A stretch of 64,000 nt of DNA, taken from Epiperipatus broadwayi. Its lineage: Eukaryota > Animalia > Onychophora. A model generated the notes under the pieces. The model had not been told where the DNA came from. It did not search any database and saw nothing but the letters and a program-made list of their open reading frames with translations. The stretch spans positions 17,608,001 to 17,672,000 of the forward strand of contig JAQFVV010000009.1 of assembly GCA_028023455.1 (NCBI GenBank), written 5' to 3'. Shown here one piece after another: positions 25,223 through 33,651 of this stretch (position 1 is its first letter; every line of letters begins with the position of its first letter). The translations under genes were made by a program, and so were the position numbers.

Positions 25223-25341
25223 AAGATGGCAAATCTTCAAACTTTAATTAAATCTATCTGCTATGTCTGAGGGTTTCTACCTTTCAGAAAACCAGTCAGA
25301 TAGTATAAAAAAATAATGAGCATACTCTTGCTATTATATAT

Positions 25342-25536
25342 ATATATAAAATACATATTTTGCGGGTTCATCCGTGTTAAAAACTTTTAATATCAATACA
25401 CTGACGTTTCGACTTGTGTCACACAAGCCATCCACAAGTCGAAACGTCAGTGTATTGATATTAAAAGTTTTTAACACGGATGAACCCGCAAAATATGTAT
25501 TTTATATATTTAACCCGTGCAAATCTTCGTTTTAAC
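25342..25536. mobile_element. PLE-type terminal fragment, family F3, forming a perfect 77-bp hairpin with a truncated hammerhead
   Basis: Arms 25342-25418 and 25433-25509 are exact reverse complements with a 14-nt loop. Minus strand reads GA-U-GGCUUGUG uga CACAAGUC-GAAA-CG-UC^AGUG, i.e. hammerhead stem II, GAAA and a GUC site with the CUGAN part missing. Inserted in (TA)n; CpGs retained. Confidence 0.75.
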
Positions 25537-25548
25537 ATATATATATAT

Positions 25549-27534
25549 TGTACTGGGGTGGAGGATTTCCCAGAAAATAATTAAATGGACACATAAATTC
25601 CTGATAGAGTAAACACAATATTTACTTTAACTCTTTGAATAAATTTGTCTTATAAAAGCAAAATTATATGACTAAAATATAATACAATATTATTCCTTGC
25701 AATTTACGTATTGCTCCACCGCGGCTCCTTAGGCAGAGAAGAGAGTACTCAAAGAGTACCTGAATCCAAGCCAGCAGATATATCTGAGAAATATATCTAA
25801 CTGACCACATTTGAAGGAAACAGATTTCTTCTCGATTGTTAAATTCAACATCACGTTCAAAGCACTTTTTTATTTTGTAGAAACATGGGTGCCAGTTACT
25901 TACCCAGAGGATAAATAATGTGCTTTAAACCATTGCCACTCATTCAACACCTAAGATACACCTATGACTAGCTCAGCTACTTGTAATCAATAACAAATTA
26001 TTGTTCCAATTAGTGGTAATAGAATTGTCTGACAAATTAAGCTTTTAAGTTTAAAAGACAATTTATTTTAATTAACATTTATTATACTAATTTTAAATAC
26101 GTTTATAAATCTTATTTAACTAACGTAACACTGATATAATTATCATGCACATTCTTAATTCCCACACTATAATATTATATAACAAAACATTAAATAATAT
26201 TTGACATTTAAAAACACACACATCAATAGTTCATCTATGTATGCTATAGAGTTCATATTACTTTACTCTGGGAGGCTTCAAACTAATGTGATGGCTACTT
26301 TAGAAATGAGAATAAGAAAATGTTATTACCTAGGATTTTAGAACATGGATTTCATCTTGCTGTGAACTTTATTTTAATAGATTTTTGTTTTCTTCCTGGT
26401 TGCTGCTTTAAGTGAGAATATTTCCAGCCAGCTGGGATGTTTTCTTGAGGAGTTTTATTATCATTCATTGGCACTATTCTTGGAGACAGTTAAATATTCC
26501 TGGTGATTCTTCAAGTTGTTATGCAGGCATTTTTCTATTCTGGGCAGGTTGCTGTTTCATTGGACTCAGGCTAGAGAAAGTCATATGTTTCCAAGGTTTT
26601 AACACTGTATTATCAGCTGATCGATTGACTGATTTAATCTCAACTGCTCAATCTCAACTCTCAAGCTCAATTGACTGATTTAATCTCAACTGCTCAATCT
26701 CAACTCTCAAGCTCAACTGTTTTCTAAACTGAACTGTCCAATAAAAAACTGGACTATTTATACTTAAGACCTGCTGTCATTTTGATATCCTCCAGCTATG
26801 TATGTTGTCAAAATTCCTTCCTTGCCATTCCTCTGATAAGCTTTTAATGCGGTGTTTTCATTTAGTAGCCACCACAAACTTATTGTTGTTGTTGTTTTTT
26901 TAACTTAATAGCAGTCGCAAAACTTGTTGTTTTATAGATTTTTAACTTAGTAGCCATCACTGAGTGTTTTTAATTTTTTAACTTTCATTTATTTCATTTT
27001 AACACACACATAGTTATGCTATGTTTACAATCGCACATATATATTTTATTAACAAGCTCACATTAATTTGTCATTTACACACATGTATATTTTATTCTAA
27101 TAAACTCAATATTAGTTTTAATATTATTTTTTCTTTCTTTAACTCAAAAGAGATTTATATTTTTAATTATTTGAAAATCAACTACTTTTTTTCTTTAACA
27201 TTTTAAATGAAGAGAGAGAGATATTTTAATTTCATGTAAAAGATTCATTTAAACCACTATAGTTTTAATCTTTTCTAAGCCAAATTCTCTCCCCCGAATT
27301 ACTTTTAAATTAATTCATAAAACTTTATGAATGATGCAGGGTTTAATTTTCCCCGGGCTAACAGTATTTTCTTCTTTATTTTGAAAAACTCTAAACTTTT
27401 ATACTAAACTTCCCTTTATTAAACTTTTAACTATTTATTATCACATTGAAACATTATGTTGTTTTTATGGGAAATTTCTAATTTTAATAATTTTTAAACA
27501 AAATTATTATAGGCACCAATATGATGTTGGTACA
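25549..27534. mobile_element. Unclassified 1986-bp insertion with TGTAC...GTACA ends (possible long solo LTR)
   Basis: Absent from the equivalent position of the 5' LTR of B. Ends are TGTAC/GTACA with ATAT on both sides. Internal tandem repeat of a ~46-bp unit (~26626-26718). On the minus strand TATAAATAG is followed by CAGTT motifs (~26720-26765). Confidence 0.5.
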
Positions 27535-27959
27535 ATATATATATAAACAGTATAAAAGTACAAATATTTACATATTAGTTGATATAGGTATATACAATAA
27601 ATCTTGCATAATGATATAAAGCTAAATGTTACCCATAGTGTCCGAGCTTTACAATTTTGATCACTTCAGCCATTTTTACTTATGGCTTTGTCATGGCTTT
27701 GTCATGGAATCCTATTAATTATTCCAATGTATTTTATATCAGTTCCATACTGGAAAATCCTGGACTGAGAGAGTGAGAATATGACTTTGCCTCCTTTTAT
27801 CTTCATCAGTTTATCCAGTATCTTTTTCAGGAGTGTAAACCGACTGCAGCACTCTTTTTAAATTTATTTACTAGAGTAACAACAACAGGTATGTGACATT
27901 TCAGTTCACTAATTTACAAATACACAGCAGTCCTTCTCCATTCTAGAAATAAACGGTGC

Positions 27960-30900
27960 CTTTAATTTAAAATGAAATCTTTAAATTTAATCGGCAGTTG
28001 GTGTACTCTAAAGACCTTGGGTATGTTCACTCTATCTCCATCTGGGATGTGTGTGAGTTCCAGTAGTGGTTCACACTTCAGATTTTCTTTTTTAAGTGAT
28101 TTTAAGTCTAATTCATTATCATGATTAGTTTCATCTCCAGGTCTCCCATTTAGCTTTGTTTCAGGTAACATGTTAAAATAATCATCTGATATAGTGTGTT
28201 CGCATTGATAGCAAAGGTGATTAATGTGTTTTCTAAAAGCTTTGCCATTTTGCAAAGCAAGTAGGTAAATTTGCTTTGATGGTAACTGTTTAACTACTCC
28301 TAGAATTCATTTACATTTCAACACATCGTTTATCCAAATGCTCTCCCCATATAAAAATTTCCTAGCTTGAAAAGGTTGTCTGACCTTAGCCTTGTTGGGT
28401 AACAGTTGACTCAGATGAGGGTGGAGGACATGACACATTAATAACTCATCAGGGTTTTTCCAGCTGCTATATTCGGAGTAAATTGCTGCATGTACATGGC
28501 TTAAGTCAAAGCTTCTGATATGTTCTGCACTTTTAGTTTTTTCAAAGTATATTTCAGATGTTGAACTCCTTGCTTAGCTATACCATTACTTTCAGAATGG
28601 TATGGAGGTGTAAGAATGTGTTTTATCCTTCTGCCACTCAGAAAGTCTATAAATTCTTTTGAAGTAAAACCTGAGCCATTATCAGTCACAATAGGATAGC
28701 CATGTGTAGCAAACAATTCATTTAAAACTTGGATGGTACTTTTGGCACTGGTATCCTTAACTAATCTGTACTTGGTCCATTGTGAATACACATCAATCAA
28801 TAATAGTATTAAATGTCCATTTAATGGCTCAACATGGTTCATATGAATGTGCAGTTAATGGAGAACTAGGCATTTCCCAAGTTTCAAACTGTTTGGGAGG
28901 TAATTTAGTTGTCTATTGACAGTTTACACATTCTTTTATCATATTTTTAATATCAGCTGTCAAATTTGGCCACCCCACATATGATCTCACTAGAGCTTTC
29001 ATATACACAACTCCTGGGTGTCCTTGTTGCAATAGTTTTAAAATTTTCACCCTGTCCTTAGTAGAGACTAATACACTGTCATTATACAATATGCATCCAT
29101 TATAAACAGAGAGTCTTTTTTGGGCAATCCAAATTGCTTTATTTAACTCTCTGGAGCATTTTATTGGCCATCCATTTCTTATCCATTTTATTAATTGGAC
29201 ATAATTTGTATCTTTCTTTGTCCAATCAGCTATGACTTTGCTATTTATGTTTTTTGAATTTAACTGTCAATGTAGTTTATTTCTTTTAATTTTATACACA
29301 TTTTTTTTAACATCCAGCAATCTGGAGAAAGCATCAGAATGTCCAATCTTCTTTCCTGGCTTATATATCAACTTGTAATCATAATGTGACAAAATGTTTA
29401 TCCACTGTAACATACGTTGACTCAAAGGTCCAGATAACTTTTTTTCACAGCCAAAAATCCCCGTTAGAGGTGATGATCAGTATAAATCATGAAATTCCAT
29501 CCATACACATATTGATGGAACTTCTATAATGCAAAAACCATGACCAATGCTTCCTTGTCCACTTGACTATAGTTTTTTCTGCTGACATCAGCACTCTAGA
29601 AGTGAAAGCGATCAGGCATTCCCCTTCATAGCATGGATGTGAGATGACAGCTCCCATGCCATATTCAAAGACATTCATTGTAATACACACAGCCCAATCA
29701 CTCCGGTAATGAACTAATAGTGCTTCTGATGTAAGCAAGTCTTTTGCAGCTTTAAATGCATTATCCTGTTCAATATTCCAGATACAACATTGTTTTTTCT
29801 TTAATAGCATATACAACGGCAATAATACATGCAATTTTCCTGCTAAAAAACTTTTGTAGAAATTCAGCAGTCCCAAAAATGCTTGCAGCTCTTTCACATT
29901 TCTTGGATTTTCTGCATTCTTTACGACTTTCACTTTTTCAAGATCTGGATGATGACCAAATGCATTTATAATATGTCCTAGGAATTTCTCTCACAGACTA
30001 TATGCATTTTCTTACATTTACTTTTGCTTTGGCTTGTACTAGCTTTGAGCAAACCGGATCTACTCACTTTTCAAGTTCAGTCTCTGTCACTCCAATATTG
30101 AATCAGAATATCATCCAGATAAAAGATTATGCCATCAATGGATCTAAGCAACATATCCATTTTTGCTTGGAAAATGTTTGTGTGACTGTTATGCCATATG
30201 GTAATTTGTTGCACTTAAGTAATCCTTTATGTGTAGTTAATGTGAGTAGCTCTGCTGTATTTTTTGTTATGGGAATCTGGTGAAAGACAGCTTCAAATCT
30301 ATTTTAGTGAAAAAATTAGCTTTCTGTAATAACACCAGCACCTCTAGCACACTTGGAACCATATAAGTTCCTTTGTTTATGTATTTATTTATAGTGATTC
30401 GATAATCCCAACATAACCATATACTTCCATCTGGTTTTATAATAGGCACTATAGGGGTCACCCAGGATGACTCTTCCATAGGGGTTAAAACTCCTTTAGA
30501 CACCAGATCTGTTATTGCATTTTCTACCTTCTCTCTCATCACAAATGGTATCTTTTGAGGTATACATATAACCACTTTTGCTTTCTATACCAGTTATATA
30601 TCAACTGGTCTCATTCTGAATTCAGATAATCCCAGCATAAACAATTCTGGATATAGTTTTTTCATTATATTTTCAATTCAAACTGTTTTTAGTATGTTTA
30701 TATGTATCCCCAAAGAGGTGAACCAATTTCTACCGAATAGTAGGCTAATATCCTTATTTACTATATATAGTACTAGGAATTTATGTCTCGAATTTAACAT
30801 CATTGGTACGGTAACTTTTCGATGAATGTCAACTCTATTTCCATTTATGTCTACAACCAGCACATCTGATTTACATAGATTTAGCTTATTATCATTATTA

Positions 30901-31076
30901 CAGTCTTGTGTGATCTTCATCCAATCTTTATGAGACAGTAGTGACAACCCAGCACCACTATCCACTTCCATAGTGATCCATTTTCTGCAAATTTGCAACT
31001 CTAAAAGGATATGATTCGTTTTCATGTCACTATTATGTATGGCCTTTATGGATGATTTTCTGTATTCCACATCTCC
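27960..31076 (-). pseudogene. pol: pol remnant of element B (PR-RT-RH-IN)
   Basis: ORF-track fragments ITMEVDSGAG; KIPFVMREKVE...WVTPIVPIIKPDGSIWLCWDYR; ELQAFLGLLNFY; LILLLIDVYSQW...IVTDNGSGFTSKEF...PPYHSESNGIAK. Confidence 0.9.
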
Positions 31077-31136
31077 CTGAGATTTGAAATCAGTTGGGGT
31101 TATCCCACACAGGTTCAAATCCTGTTAACTGTGCCA
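31077..31136 (+). pseudogene. Captured copy of the 3' ~60 nt of mature tRNA-Ser(UGA), including CCA, at the PBS of element B
   Basis: CTGA(GA)-TT TGA AA-TCAGT | TGGGGTTATCCCA (long variable arm) | ACAGG-TTCAAAT-CCTGT (T arm) | TAACTGT-G-CCA. The CCA end lies 3 nt from the LTR edge at 31140. Differences from a canonical tRNA-Ser are mostly CpG-type transitions. Confidence 0.85.
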
Positions 31137-31225
31137 TGCTGCTATGTCTGAGGGTTTCTATCTTTCAGAAAACCAGTCAGATAGCATAAAGAAATAATGA
31201 GCATACGCTTGCTATTTTGTATATA

Positions 31226-32220
31226 CACCTGGTCTCTTTTTACGTGGATTTATTTAACGCAATTTTGAAGTTACGCAATCCATGTTTCTTCGGAACTCCG
31301 ATAATGCGCTATTACTTTAAATAATAAATTTCACGCACTTACGTCATATTGAAAGTAATAGCACATTATTGGAATTTGACTTTCATCTTAGTAATTTCAA
31401 TATTTTCAGTGCTTTATAATAGTAAGATTTTATGCAATAATGAAATTAAAATCATGATTTCCACATTTTATGTATACACACATTAAATTTTACAAGATTA
31501 TAATGTAAATTTGTTCAAACATTGTGCGTGTTAATTTTGCATTTTAAATCACATTCTTTTTTTCTTTTTAAAAAAGAACGTAATCAATTATTAATCCTTT
31601 AGTGTCCGCAAGTTTATTTTTAATTATTTTCTTATTAATGACACTAATCATGAACGTGCTCTTAAATTCCGAGAGCTAAATGGTTGTATGTCTGAATATT
31701 GCGAGCTTCATAAACAATTAATAAAATCATTGTCTCAAAGATTAATTACTAATTACGTTGTCACCAGAAAATCATTAACACAACATGAGAGTGAAGTTGG
31801 CGCTAGTTGTATTTCCTCTTGTGAAGAATCTGATTTTTTACCATTTTGCAAACGAACTTATTTATCGGCAAGTAGCGATAATAATTAAAACATGTATAAA
31901 AAAATGTCAATTACTGTACTGTAAATTATGCATAAAAATATATTATTTTGAATAAAATTAAATATTATATTTAAAAAAAGTTTGTCTTGTATCAATTTTT
32001 TTCAAATTTGAAATTTTTTATTAGTCATATTTTATTTCCTTATTTTTTTTTTGCACGAATTTTAATGTAATTTTACATTGGTGCTTTGCTTTTACATAAT
32101 TTTTGAAAAATCACAGTCCGTATCCCCCCTTTTTCAAGGTAAGGTAGTCTATTTTTGCACGATTTCATTTGCGCGTGTTTTCTGAGGAACCTATCTATTG
32201 CATAAAACAAGACCCAGGTG
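31226..32220. mobile_element. Tc1/mariner-superfamily (pogo/Tigger-like) MITE inserted in the 5' LTR of B
   Basis: Imperfect ~20-bp TIRs CACCTGGTCTCTTTTTACG / CACCTGGGTCTTGTTTTATG with TA on both sides. The short ORF 31688-31888 (LIKSLSQRLITNY) may be a transposase C-terminal relic. CpGs retained. Confidence 0.75.
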
Positions 32221-33651
32221 TATATTTAATCCATATTTAAACAGTATAAAAGTACAAATATTTACATATTAGTTGATATATGTATATATGTATATACAAT
32301 AAATCTTGCATAATGCTATAAAGTTAAATGTTACCCATACATGTCTGAGCCTTACAATTTTGATCACTTCAACCATTTTCACTTATGACTTTGTCATGGA
32401 ATCCTATTAATTATTCCAATGCATTTTATATTGGCTCCATACTGGAGAATCTTGGACTGAGAGAGTGAGAATATGATTCTGCCTCCTTTTATCTTCATAA
32501 GTTTATCCAGCATCTTTTTCAGGAGTGTAAACCGACTGCAGCACTCTCTTTAAAGTTATTTACTAGAGTAATGACAACAGGTACATGACATTTCAGTTCA
32601 CTAATTTACAAATACACAGCACTATCTAGTGAAACAAACCAAGTACTTATTTTTTAATACTTATCCAATATAATCTATGAATGAACAAAATAACAATGGC
32701 TTCTAAAAATTTATCGAATAAACAAAAAATGAAAATTAACAATTTCTTCTCTTAAATAAATCCTGAACTCCTAATTTTTGGAGTATATAATAAAGAATAG
32801 CATGTTCAATATAACTAAGTTATTAACAATATTAAAAAGATTAAATTATTTTTTTAACAGTTGGTTTTAGTATAATTGTTTTATTATTGAAAAAATATGA
32901 GAGAAACTATCCTTATTAATAGAAAACATAAATAAGTTAAATGTGGATTTTAAAACAAATAATTTTTTTTAAGAAGTTGATGTTAATGGAAATATTGAAC
33001 TAATACAAGAAAAGCTATTTTTGTTAATGCAAAACATAAACAAGATATTTGTAAGTTTCAGAATTAAAAGTGACTAATTGATTTTTTAAAATTATCATTT
33101 TTAATAAATTAGTGTTAACAGTATATAAGAATTGCATCAACTATGTTTATGACTAATTGCGAATTAAAGTTGACCTAATTGGATGGTCTGAATGAATTAT
33201 AAACTTGTTCTAGGTGGGGTGGTCCTAGTGAAATGTAAACATTACATTAGCATTGTTATGATTATTGTGCAAAAAATATGATGGAAACAAACCAATATAT
33301 TGTAACATACATAATTATAAGTGTTACATGAGGTATTTTATGTTAAGAATATTTAGAAAAAAATTATGTATTATTTTTTTATTAACAAAAAAGACTGTCA
33401 GTTTAATAAATAAAATAAAGAGAATTTAAAATAAATGAAAAGTTGGTTAACAGGAAAAGAAAATGAAAATAAAACTCTGTATCCTAATCTCAATTTAAAA
33501 TAATAAAAAAAATAAAAAAATAGATGAGGGGAAAAATAATTAAAATATAAAGTAAGAATTTTAATTACATTTACTATTTGAAAGGATGTATCTTCTCTTT
33601 TAATTAAAAGAAAAAATTCCAAAATGTTATGACGTATAATAAAAAATAAAA

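Follow-up and report, generated by a model that had tools for sequence, protein, structure and literature searches.

How did the complement of a long stretch of mature tRNA-Ser, CCA end included, come to lie between the 5' long terminal repeat (LTR) and the protease region of a retrotransposon in the onychophoran Epiperipatus broadwayi, at the place where its relatives carry a leader and gag? In the standard scheme of reverse transcription the plus strand starts from the polypurine tract (PPT), copies U3-R-U5 together with 18 nt of the attached primer tRNA, and halts before m1A58 (PMC13191261). A first-pass annotation proposed that the mature primer had here been copied far beyond those 18 nt, and that the product had been joined to an internal site with gag deleted and then integrated. 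We evaluate this proposal for the window, by which we mean the whole 64,000-nt stretch of DNA that was analyzed (GCA_028023455.1, JAQFVV010000009.1:17,608,001-17,672,000, forward strand); all coordinates are window positions.

Anatomy of the element and identity of its primer

The element occupies the minus strand, and its features are as follows.

25259-32621, minus strand: whole element, Ty3/gypsy, degenerate
32622-32626, minus strand: 5' target site duplication (TSD) GATAG in element sense, read directly and identical to 25258-25254
32221-32621, minus strand: upstream (U3-side) part of the 5' LTR, with its TG start at 32621; 89% identical to 27539-27929
31226-32220, no strand assigned: unrelated insertion X1 at a TA site of the 5' LTR, with CACCTGG...CCAGGTG as its terminal inverted repeats; a very abundant repeat
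31140-31225, minus strand: downstream part of the 5' LTR, with its end ...CATAGCA at 31140; 93% identical to 25258-25344
31137-31139, minus strand: 3-nt spacer GCA between LTR and primer binding site (PBS), where relatives have GAG or GAA
31092-31136, minus strand: complement of mature tRNA-Ser(UGA) from position 76 (CCA) to 41, 45 nt tRNA-specific; absent from the element's relatives
31084-31091, minus strand: 8-nt microhomology GATTTCAA, the crossover zone, common to tRNA positions 40-33 and the gag/protease (PR) linker
27962-31083, minus strand: degenerate pol with PR (DSGA), reverse transcriptase (RT; YLDD), RNase H and integrase, from open reading frame pieces, Pfam and collinearity
27930-27943, minus strand: polypurine-tract-like AATGGAGAAGGAC, abutting the 3' LTR
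27535-27929, minus strand: upstream part of the 3' LTR, with its TG start at 27929
25345-27534, no strand assigned: insertion(s) X2 in the 3' LTR, ~2.19 kb, with approximate boundaries (TA repeats)
25259-25344, minus strand: downstream part of the 3' LTR, with its end ...CATAGCA at 25259
25254-25258, minus strand: 3' TSD GATAG

The assignment to Ty3/gypsy draws on two direct LTRs bounded by TG...CA, a PBS (TGG...) that begins 3 nt past the 5' LTR and matches tRNA-Ser, a GGAGAAGGAC tract before 27929, and the pol order PR-RT-RNase H-integrase, every piece of which is broken by stops. Both LTRs and a perfect TSD had been annotated, and both were borne out, the TSD being the 5-bp GATAG at 32626-32622 and again at 25258-25254. 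Pfam searches of the minus strand recovered RT_RNaseH_2, Integrase_H2C2 and rve in that order and returned only sub-threshold matches for the protease and RT pieces of the window; the pol of this copy carries stops and frameshifts throughout and is collinear with that of relatives from 31091 down. The gag region (capsid and CCHC nucleocapsid), which in intact relatives lies between the PBS and the joint described below, is absent upstream of pol in the window. From the LTR end to the DSGA protease motif we measured ~175 bp, in agreement with the ~170 bp first noted, while intact relatives are ~0.8 kb longer over this interval. The window copy is a deletion derivative of its family and non-autonomous.

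Two interleaved repeat pairs in the window (25258-25344/31139-31225 and 27539-27929/32233-32621) are parts of a single LTR of ~485 bp, as is evident from other genomic copies, and in the window an unrelated insertion interrupts each LTR at one and the same TA-rich spot. Reading the interleaved pairs as two overlapping elements was rejected for this reason, as was reading the 87-nt repeat as a complete short LTR or the body of a tRNA-derived SINE, since other copies extend ~400 nt upstream and match the second repeat pair there. The 87-nt LTR end has many genome copies that are paired 4.3-6 kb apart, and in other family copies the sequence upstream of it is the same as the U3-side part in the window. 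The LTR halves are 7-11% divergent, indicating that the insertion is old. X1 (995 bp) sits at a TA site and ends in the inverted repeats CACCTGG(G)TCT.../...AGAGACCAGGTG, and its word depth of 1e5-1e6 in short-read contigs, versus ~20-40 for unique flanks, marks it as a member of an extremely abundant repeat family. X2 begins with a near-perfect palindrome at ~25345-25540. The two insertions are independent and both lie in the same LTR microsatellite, the TA-rich spot, which suggests that it is a hotspot for TA-targeting transposons.

Read downward from 31136, the element carries the complement of the CCA end, acceptor strand, T arm, long variable arm and 3' side of the anticodon arm of a tRNA-Ser, continuous with the PBS and in register with it, including the post-transcriptional CCA. 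A search of the 5.6-Gb genome with the 64-nt tract gave 10 candidates, all of which were scored and among which were the tRNA-Ser(UGA) and tRNA-Ser(AGA) genes. The host tRNA-Ser(UGA) gene at L032:1498-1581 (identified with ARAGORN), against which the first-pass annotation had suggested aligning the tract, does match: window positions 31084-31136 correspond to tRNA positions 33-76 plus CCA without an indel, in the PBS register, at 47 of 53 identical positions, or 52 of 53 with CpG transitions set aside. CpG to TpG/CpA transitions account for five of the six mismatches, and the one left over, A to G, falls in the variable arm. This arm agrees with the UGA isoacceptor and not with the AGA or GCU genes, which identifies the primer as tRNA-Ser(UGA). 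Because the 3' flank of the host gene is GAGT and not CCA, the template was a mature tRNA, and the proposal that a mature primer was copied far beyond 18 nt is upheld. ARAGORN found no tRNA in the window, as the 5' half of the tRNA is missing. In three runs of a single sample, short-read contigs cover 30986-31191, from the LTR end through the tract to the joint, with 0 differences, so the junction is not an assembly artefact.

The joint in the gag/protease linker and its uniqueness

Aligned with eleven intact relatives, the window loses similarity at the PBS region and regains it at 31091, a point that in all eleven lies 790-840 bp from the LTR end, right after a gag with two CCHC knuckles. 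At the crossover the linker of the relatives reads ...GAAGCCA|GATTTCAAATCTCAGGG and the tRNA complement ...CCCAACT|GATTTCAAGTCAGT; laid out as a three-way joint, the end of the gag DNA is ...GAAGCCA|GATTTCAAATCTCAGGGAGAGGTGG, the window is ...CCCAACT|GATTTCAAATCTCAGGGAGATGTGG and the tRNA complement is ...CCCAACT|GATTTCAAGTCAGTCGCC. The 45 nt at 31136-31092 (tRNA positions 76-41) are tRNA-specific, and everything from 31083 down is the element's own. Between them lies the octamer GATTTCAA (31091-31084, positions 40-33), which matches exactly in both the tRNA and the element linker and occurs once in the 5' 0.85 kb of the relatives that keep it; the chance of eight matching bases at a random joint is ~1.5e-5. 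The annotation had recommended recovering intact family members and inspecting the junction for microhomology, and the comparison of eleven relatives supplied these 8 nt.

Since the microhomology covers positions 40-33, it masks the true 3' end of the copy: the end lies within 40-33, C32 is not copied, and the exact base is hidden. By the alignment, the tRNA copy comprises 45 to 53 nt. The annotation had placed the stop at 27-28, beside m2,2G26, and had taken the 5' strand of the anticodon stem to be copied as well. The relatives contradict both points, as they put the tRNA-specific end at 41 with the microhomology at 40-33, and the supposed stem strand is gag/PR linker common to the 11 intact relatives. 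Because the sequence from 31091 downward is this linker, neither C32 nor G26 was copied. The apparent 5' stem strand is thus a chance resemblance, and the copy ends at or before U33, next to C32 and not next to G26. A GAT in place of C32, considered as a misincorporation or indel at m3C32, was rejected because these bases belong to the element itself. The claim of a tRNA copy running from CCA through the whole anticodon arm therefore holds through the 3' side of that arm and fails for the 5' stem strand, whereas the claim of a joint to an internal site agrees with what we found: the joint is in the gag/PR linker, leader and gag are gone, and the TSD is normal.

No second copy of the window junction exists among the 10 scored candidates from the 5.6-Gb genome. 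Instead, 12 of 13 sampled 5' junctions have an imperfect tRNA-like tract of 15-26 nt, mostly 26 nt; L013 keeps 10 nt only, after a deletion, and altogether 3 of the 13 keep less than 26 nt (10 to 24 nt). Compared with the tRNA, the 26-nt tract has an additional T as well as further indels, and the CCA of the window tract is at the same offset as TGG in every relative. This shorter tract resembles either the decayed remains of an earlier over-extension or something that does the work of a primer over-extension sequence (POS). The junctions of ten family members (L006, L008, L009, L011, L016, L020, L021, L026, L027 and L029) have a PBS with the extra T versus tRNA-Ser, of the type TGGCGCAGT-T-CGACAG when CpG decay is allowed for. 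Were the primer sequence inherited in each cycle the extra T should be erased, so the primer copy may normally not be inherited here, as has reportedly been found for yeast Ty1.

The annotation had offered, as an alternative, a heritable extended PBS followed by a later loss of gag. The imperfect 26-nt tract common to relatives lends this some weak support, but the long copy is in none of them, and no family member combines the long tract with an intact leader. None shares it with an intact gag either, so a one-off origin withstands this comparison. L100, L082, L087, L104 and L034 were rejected as progenitors with the same LTR, their similarity being limited to the tRNA part and ~20 nt; L100 and others have somewhat similar LTR ends and long tracts, but their interiors are unrelated.

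Weighing the routes to the joint

We read the window locus, with a probability of roughly 70%, as a fossil of over-extended plus-strand strong-stop DNA from a Ty3/gypsy element primed by tRNA-Ser(UGA). Plus-strand synthesis would have failed to halt after 18 nt, before A58, and would have continued via the T arm and variable arm into the anticodon loop, ending between positions 40 and 33 with C32 uncopied. The 3' end of this product, ...GATTTCAA-3', would then have paired not at the PBS but ~0.8 kb downstream of it, with the linker octamer as copied into the minus strand, either as the growing minus strand had just reached the octamer or by invading a finished minus strand. Extension of both strands would have yielded double-stranded DNA with two LTRs, the PBS and 35 extra tRNA nt, without leader or gag, and integrase would have inserted it with the normal 5-bp duplication; decay, with no later amplification, would have followed. 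We infer both this order of events and the exact 3' end within 33-40. An end at U33, directly before C32, would have made all 8 nt available with a matched 3' terminus.

A role for tRNA modification would be in keeping with this scheme. On primers that lack m1A58 the strong-stop product is over-extended, and there are documented products that stop in the anticodon loop, at position 37 (PMC8599865, PMC13191261). Yeast and mammalian tRNA-Ser carry m3C32 and i6A37, and m3C32 is a hard RT stop on tRNA-Ser (PMC7969016). By analogy, A58 may have been unmethylated or bypassed in the primer and synthesis may have been blocked at m3C32 or i6A37, and an end at U33 would fit the hard stop at m3C32. A58 is copied faithfully in the window tract, which fits an unmodified A58 but proves nothing.

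We consider it unlikely, although worth weighing, that the joint arose in two steps, from an ancestor that had the long tRNA copy together with leader and gag and later lost ~0.8 kb by a chromosomal microhomology-mediated deletion, in which end joining or replication slippage linked the GATTTCAA of the tRNA tract to that of the linker. Direct 8-nt repeats are typical of such deletions, other families carry heritable extended tracts with shared internal sequence (L063/L084 and the L043/47/55/56/58 group), and the relatives of the window element have their common imperfect 26-nt tract. Because the TSD also survives a post-integration internal deletion, the timing of the deletion is not proven. 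Against this history, a copy with the same family LTR and a long tract was not found elsewhere in the genome, the sampled 5' junctions (12-13) all have the short, indel-bearing tract only, and two rare events are needed where one suffices.

Recombination between two templates is a still more doubtful route. Here the LTR and long tract would derive from another element or a co-packaged RNA and would have been joined to the family pol at the octamer, by template switching or ectopic recombination. Several unrelated families do have long tRNA-Ser tracts, and L100/L118 resembles the window element in its LTR terminus and variable-arm variant. The LTR end next to the window tract (31140-31225), however, is 93% identical to the element's own 3' LTR and typical of the family, L100 shares only the tRNA part and ~20 nt with the family, and a donor family with the same LTR end and tract was not found.

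We find it very hard to sustain that the tract is an independent tRNA retropseudogene, or a 5'-truncated tRNA-derived SINE, inserted antisense beside the LTR. The plus-strand order of tRNA part, CCA, conserved 87 nt and TA-rich tail is indeed SINE-like, and the genome contains many copies of the 87-nt unit. That unit is nevertheless the end of the ~485-bp LTR, paired 4.3-6 kb apart around gag-pol, and the CCA sits exactly where every relative has its TGG. The annotation had named a TSD or poly(A) of its own as the mark of a retropseudogene; the tract shows neither, it lacks a 5' tRNA half with an A box, it is continuous with the element on both sides, and its far side joins the element's own sequence in register. 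Chance resemblance, which accounts for only the short apparent 5' stem strand, or an assembly artefact deserves next to no credence given 47/53 identity in an indel-free register, decay that is mostly CpG (5/6 differences), 0 matches for reversed-pattern controls, and the error-free short-read contigs across the junction in three runs.

The preferred reading, over-extended strong-stop DNA rescued at an internal acceptor, resembles several known systems in part. Retroviral over-extended strong-stop DNA stops at Psi55, m5Um54 and ms2t6A37 of tRNA-Lys3 (PMC13191261, PMC8599865), with a minor class of products, seen in vitro, ending in the anticodon loop at modified base 37, a modification that is bulky or affects the Watson-Crick face (PMC13191261), and in HIV-1 the over-extended product is mismatched to the normal acceptor and described as unable to complete integration (PMC8599865). 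In our reading the plus strand of this element likewise ran beyond 18 nt of its primer tRNA, but whereas the HIV-1 intermediates were seen in vitro and in cell culture, this copy became fixed in a germline; it belongs to a Ty3/gypsy element of invertebrate type with a tRNA-Ser primer, and its rescue was at an internal acceptor. The POS of lentiviruses and spumaviruses is a heritable PBS-adjacent stretch that matches the tRNA beyond position 58 and permits the transfer of slightly over-extended strong-stop DNA, according to what PMC13191261 relates of Muthuswami et al. 2002. The imperfect 26-nt tract of the family's intact members is like a POS but longer, whereas the 45-53-nt copy in the window, unlike a POS of a few nt that is a family trait, is unique to one insertion and has its acceptor 0.8 kb away.

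The window element also shares with proviruses produced by misplaced strand transfer a large deletion with one end at the U5/PBS border, short homology and, if our reading holds, an origin in a single replication round. Defective proviruses of this kind were reportedly described for avian and murine retroviral vectors in culture by Olsen and Swanstrom in 1985 and by Pulsinelli and Temin in 1991, both in J Virol; those reports differ from our case in concerning such vectors. Ohshima, Okada and colleagues are said to have proposed, in PNAS in 1993, that tRNA-derived SINEs with CCA arose from strong-stop DNA. As in that model, tRNA and CCA abut a retroviral-type U5 end in the window, a layout seen also in L040, L033 and L036; unlike tRNA-derived SINEs, the window tract lies inside a full LTR element with a TSD and is not a dispersed family. 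Finally, the element keeps LTRs, PBS and PPT and has no structural gene, as do gag-less elements of the LARD/TRIM-like type, but those are amplified families whereas this is a single copy with a deletion mechanism that can be read from its joint. An integrated element built in this way was not described in the literature that we searched.

Other over-extended tRNA-Ser copies and their meaning

Our genome survey used a pattern, tolerant of CpG changes, that covers the last 18 nt of tRNA-Ser plus CCA, and a version of it extended to position 52. The 18-nt PBS pattern had 588 exact matches, versus 22 for the extended one (25 nt or more; 64 with one mismatch), and reversed-pattern controls gave 0 matches. 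A stop near position 58 is therefore the rule, with read-through in a minority of roughly 4%. Of the 63 extended sites, many have endpoints at 47-51 or within the variable arm, and these are often characteristic of a family. Whether endpoints pile up at modified positions, as the annotation had suggested they might, receives a mixed answer: of about 14 long copies that extend into the anticodon arm, 12 have their end at positions 32-40, but endpoints overall are spread with no sharp pile-up. At 49-51, many endpoints have been passed on within families and so are not independent events, and the concentration at 32-40 is suggestive and not a statistical test.

Six copies extend past position 32 (L050, which is the same site as L035, and L059, L033, L036, L040 and L117). 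All six read T there, while C32 is present in every tRNA-Ser gene or pseudogene found; we searched the genome for a tRNA-Ser gene carrying T32 without success. Of five AGA-type copies, four have G at position 34, as expected for inosine (PMC8062790). As far as the copies themselves indicate, T32 and G34 are most plausibly RT signatures of a modified mature tRNA.

Several of these loci have structures of their own. L050:839-2150 (G000:C6260) has two 628-nt arms, 100% complementary, each with LTR, spacer and TGG, around a 56-nt loop that is tRNA-Ser(AGA) positions 27-73 and differs from the gene only at T32 and G34; these two differences from the AGA gene are also the only ones over positions 27-76. 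A clear TSD was not seen at L050. This locus looks like a snap-back of over-extended strong-stop DNA at G26, or else an assembly fold-back; a copy end at G26 is present in L050 and not in the window element. L080:484-613 holds a 65-nt inverted duplication without spacer, running from tRNA-Ser complement to sense with its axis near position 40 and followed by CCA and an LTR end, which looks like a hairpin formed within the tRNA copy. In L040 (G000:C13372:25672-25716 region) a tRNA-Ser(UGA) copy with CCA adjoins an LTR end; this is the longest read-through seen, reaching the D loop (~position 13), with T at 32 and T at G26.

L054:1212-1525 belongs to a different LTR family and has a tRNA-Ser copy to ~position 32-36 with protease-like sequence within ~200 nt (tblastx to the window's protease; Pfam Ty3 peptidase at E=0.004, below threshold), and is probably a second, independent gag-less derivative. 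L117:1500-3037 has integrase-like sequence, a putative LTR of ~1 kb and then a tRNA-Ser(AGA) copy to ~position 27, which would be a copy attached to a putative 3' LTR instead of the 5' LTR. At L042:1519-1749 a 40-nt tRNA-Ser copy passes immediately into the open frame ...GGRVFTKIDLKK..., which resembles the first RT motif; the motif was read by eye, and Pfam and tblastx gave no support for a join in RT at this locus, where a transfer into RT with loss of gag and protease is possible. Open reading frames beside other long copies had sub-threshold Pfam matches only.

The ingredients of the event that we propose for the window, namely over-extension past A58, secondary stops, POS and misplaced-transfer deletions, are known from retrovirus biochemistry. 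What is new is a germline-fixed Ty3/gypsy product that retains 45-53 nt of its primer together with the visible microhomology that rescued it. Work on HIV-1 treats strong-stop DNA extended past m1A58 as a dead end (PMC8599865); at the window locus such a product would have been completed and integrated in the germline via a short internal homology, at the price of everything between the PBS and that homology. The variable arm names the primer isoacceptor beyond doubt, and the locus would supply a mechanism for the one-step origin of gag-less LTR derivatives.

Taken together, the window and the surveyed loci raise a broader reading, for and against which we see the odds as about even: that PBS-adjacent DNA archives tRNA-Ser modification and that over-extended strong-stop DNA recurrently creates LTR-element variants. 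The variants may include gag-less copies (the window and L054), joins in RT (L042, by eye), LTR fold-backs (L050) and snap-back hairpins (L080). The archive may comprise A34 read as G (inosine), C32 read as T or as an endpoint, G26 read as T or as an endpoint, and A58 passed at ~4% of sites. This suggests that tRNA copies beside the PBS can be mined for natural RT signatures (I34, position 32 and position 26) in organisms for which no tRNA chemistry exists.
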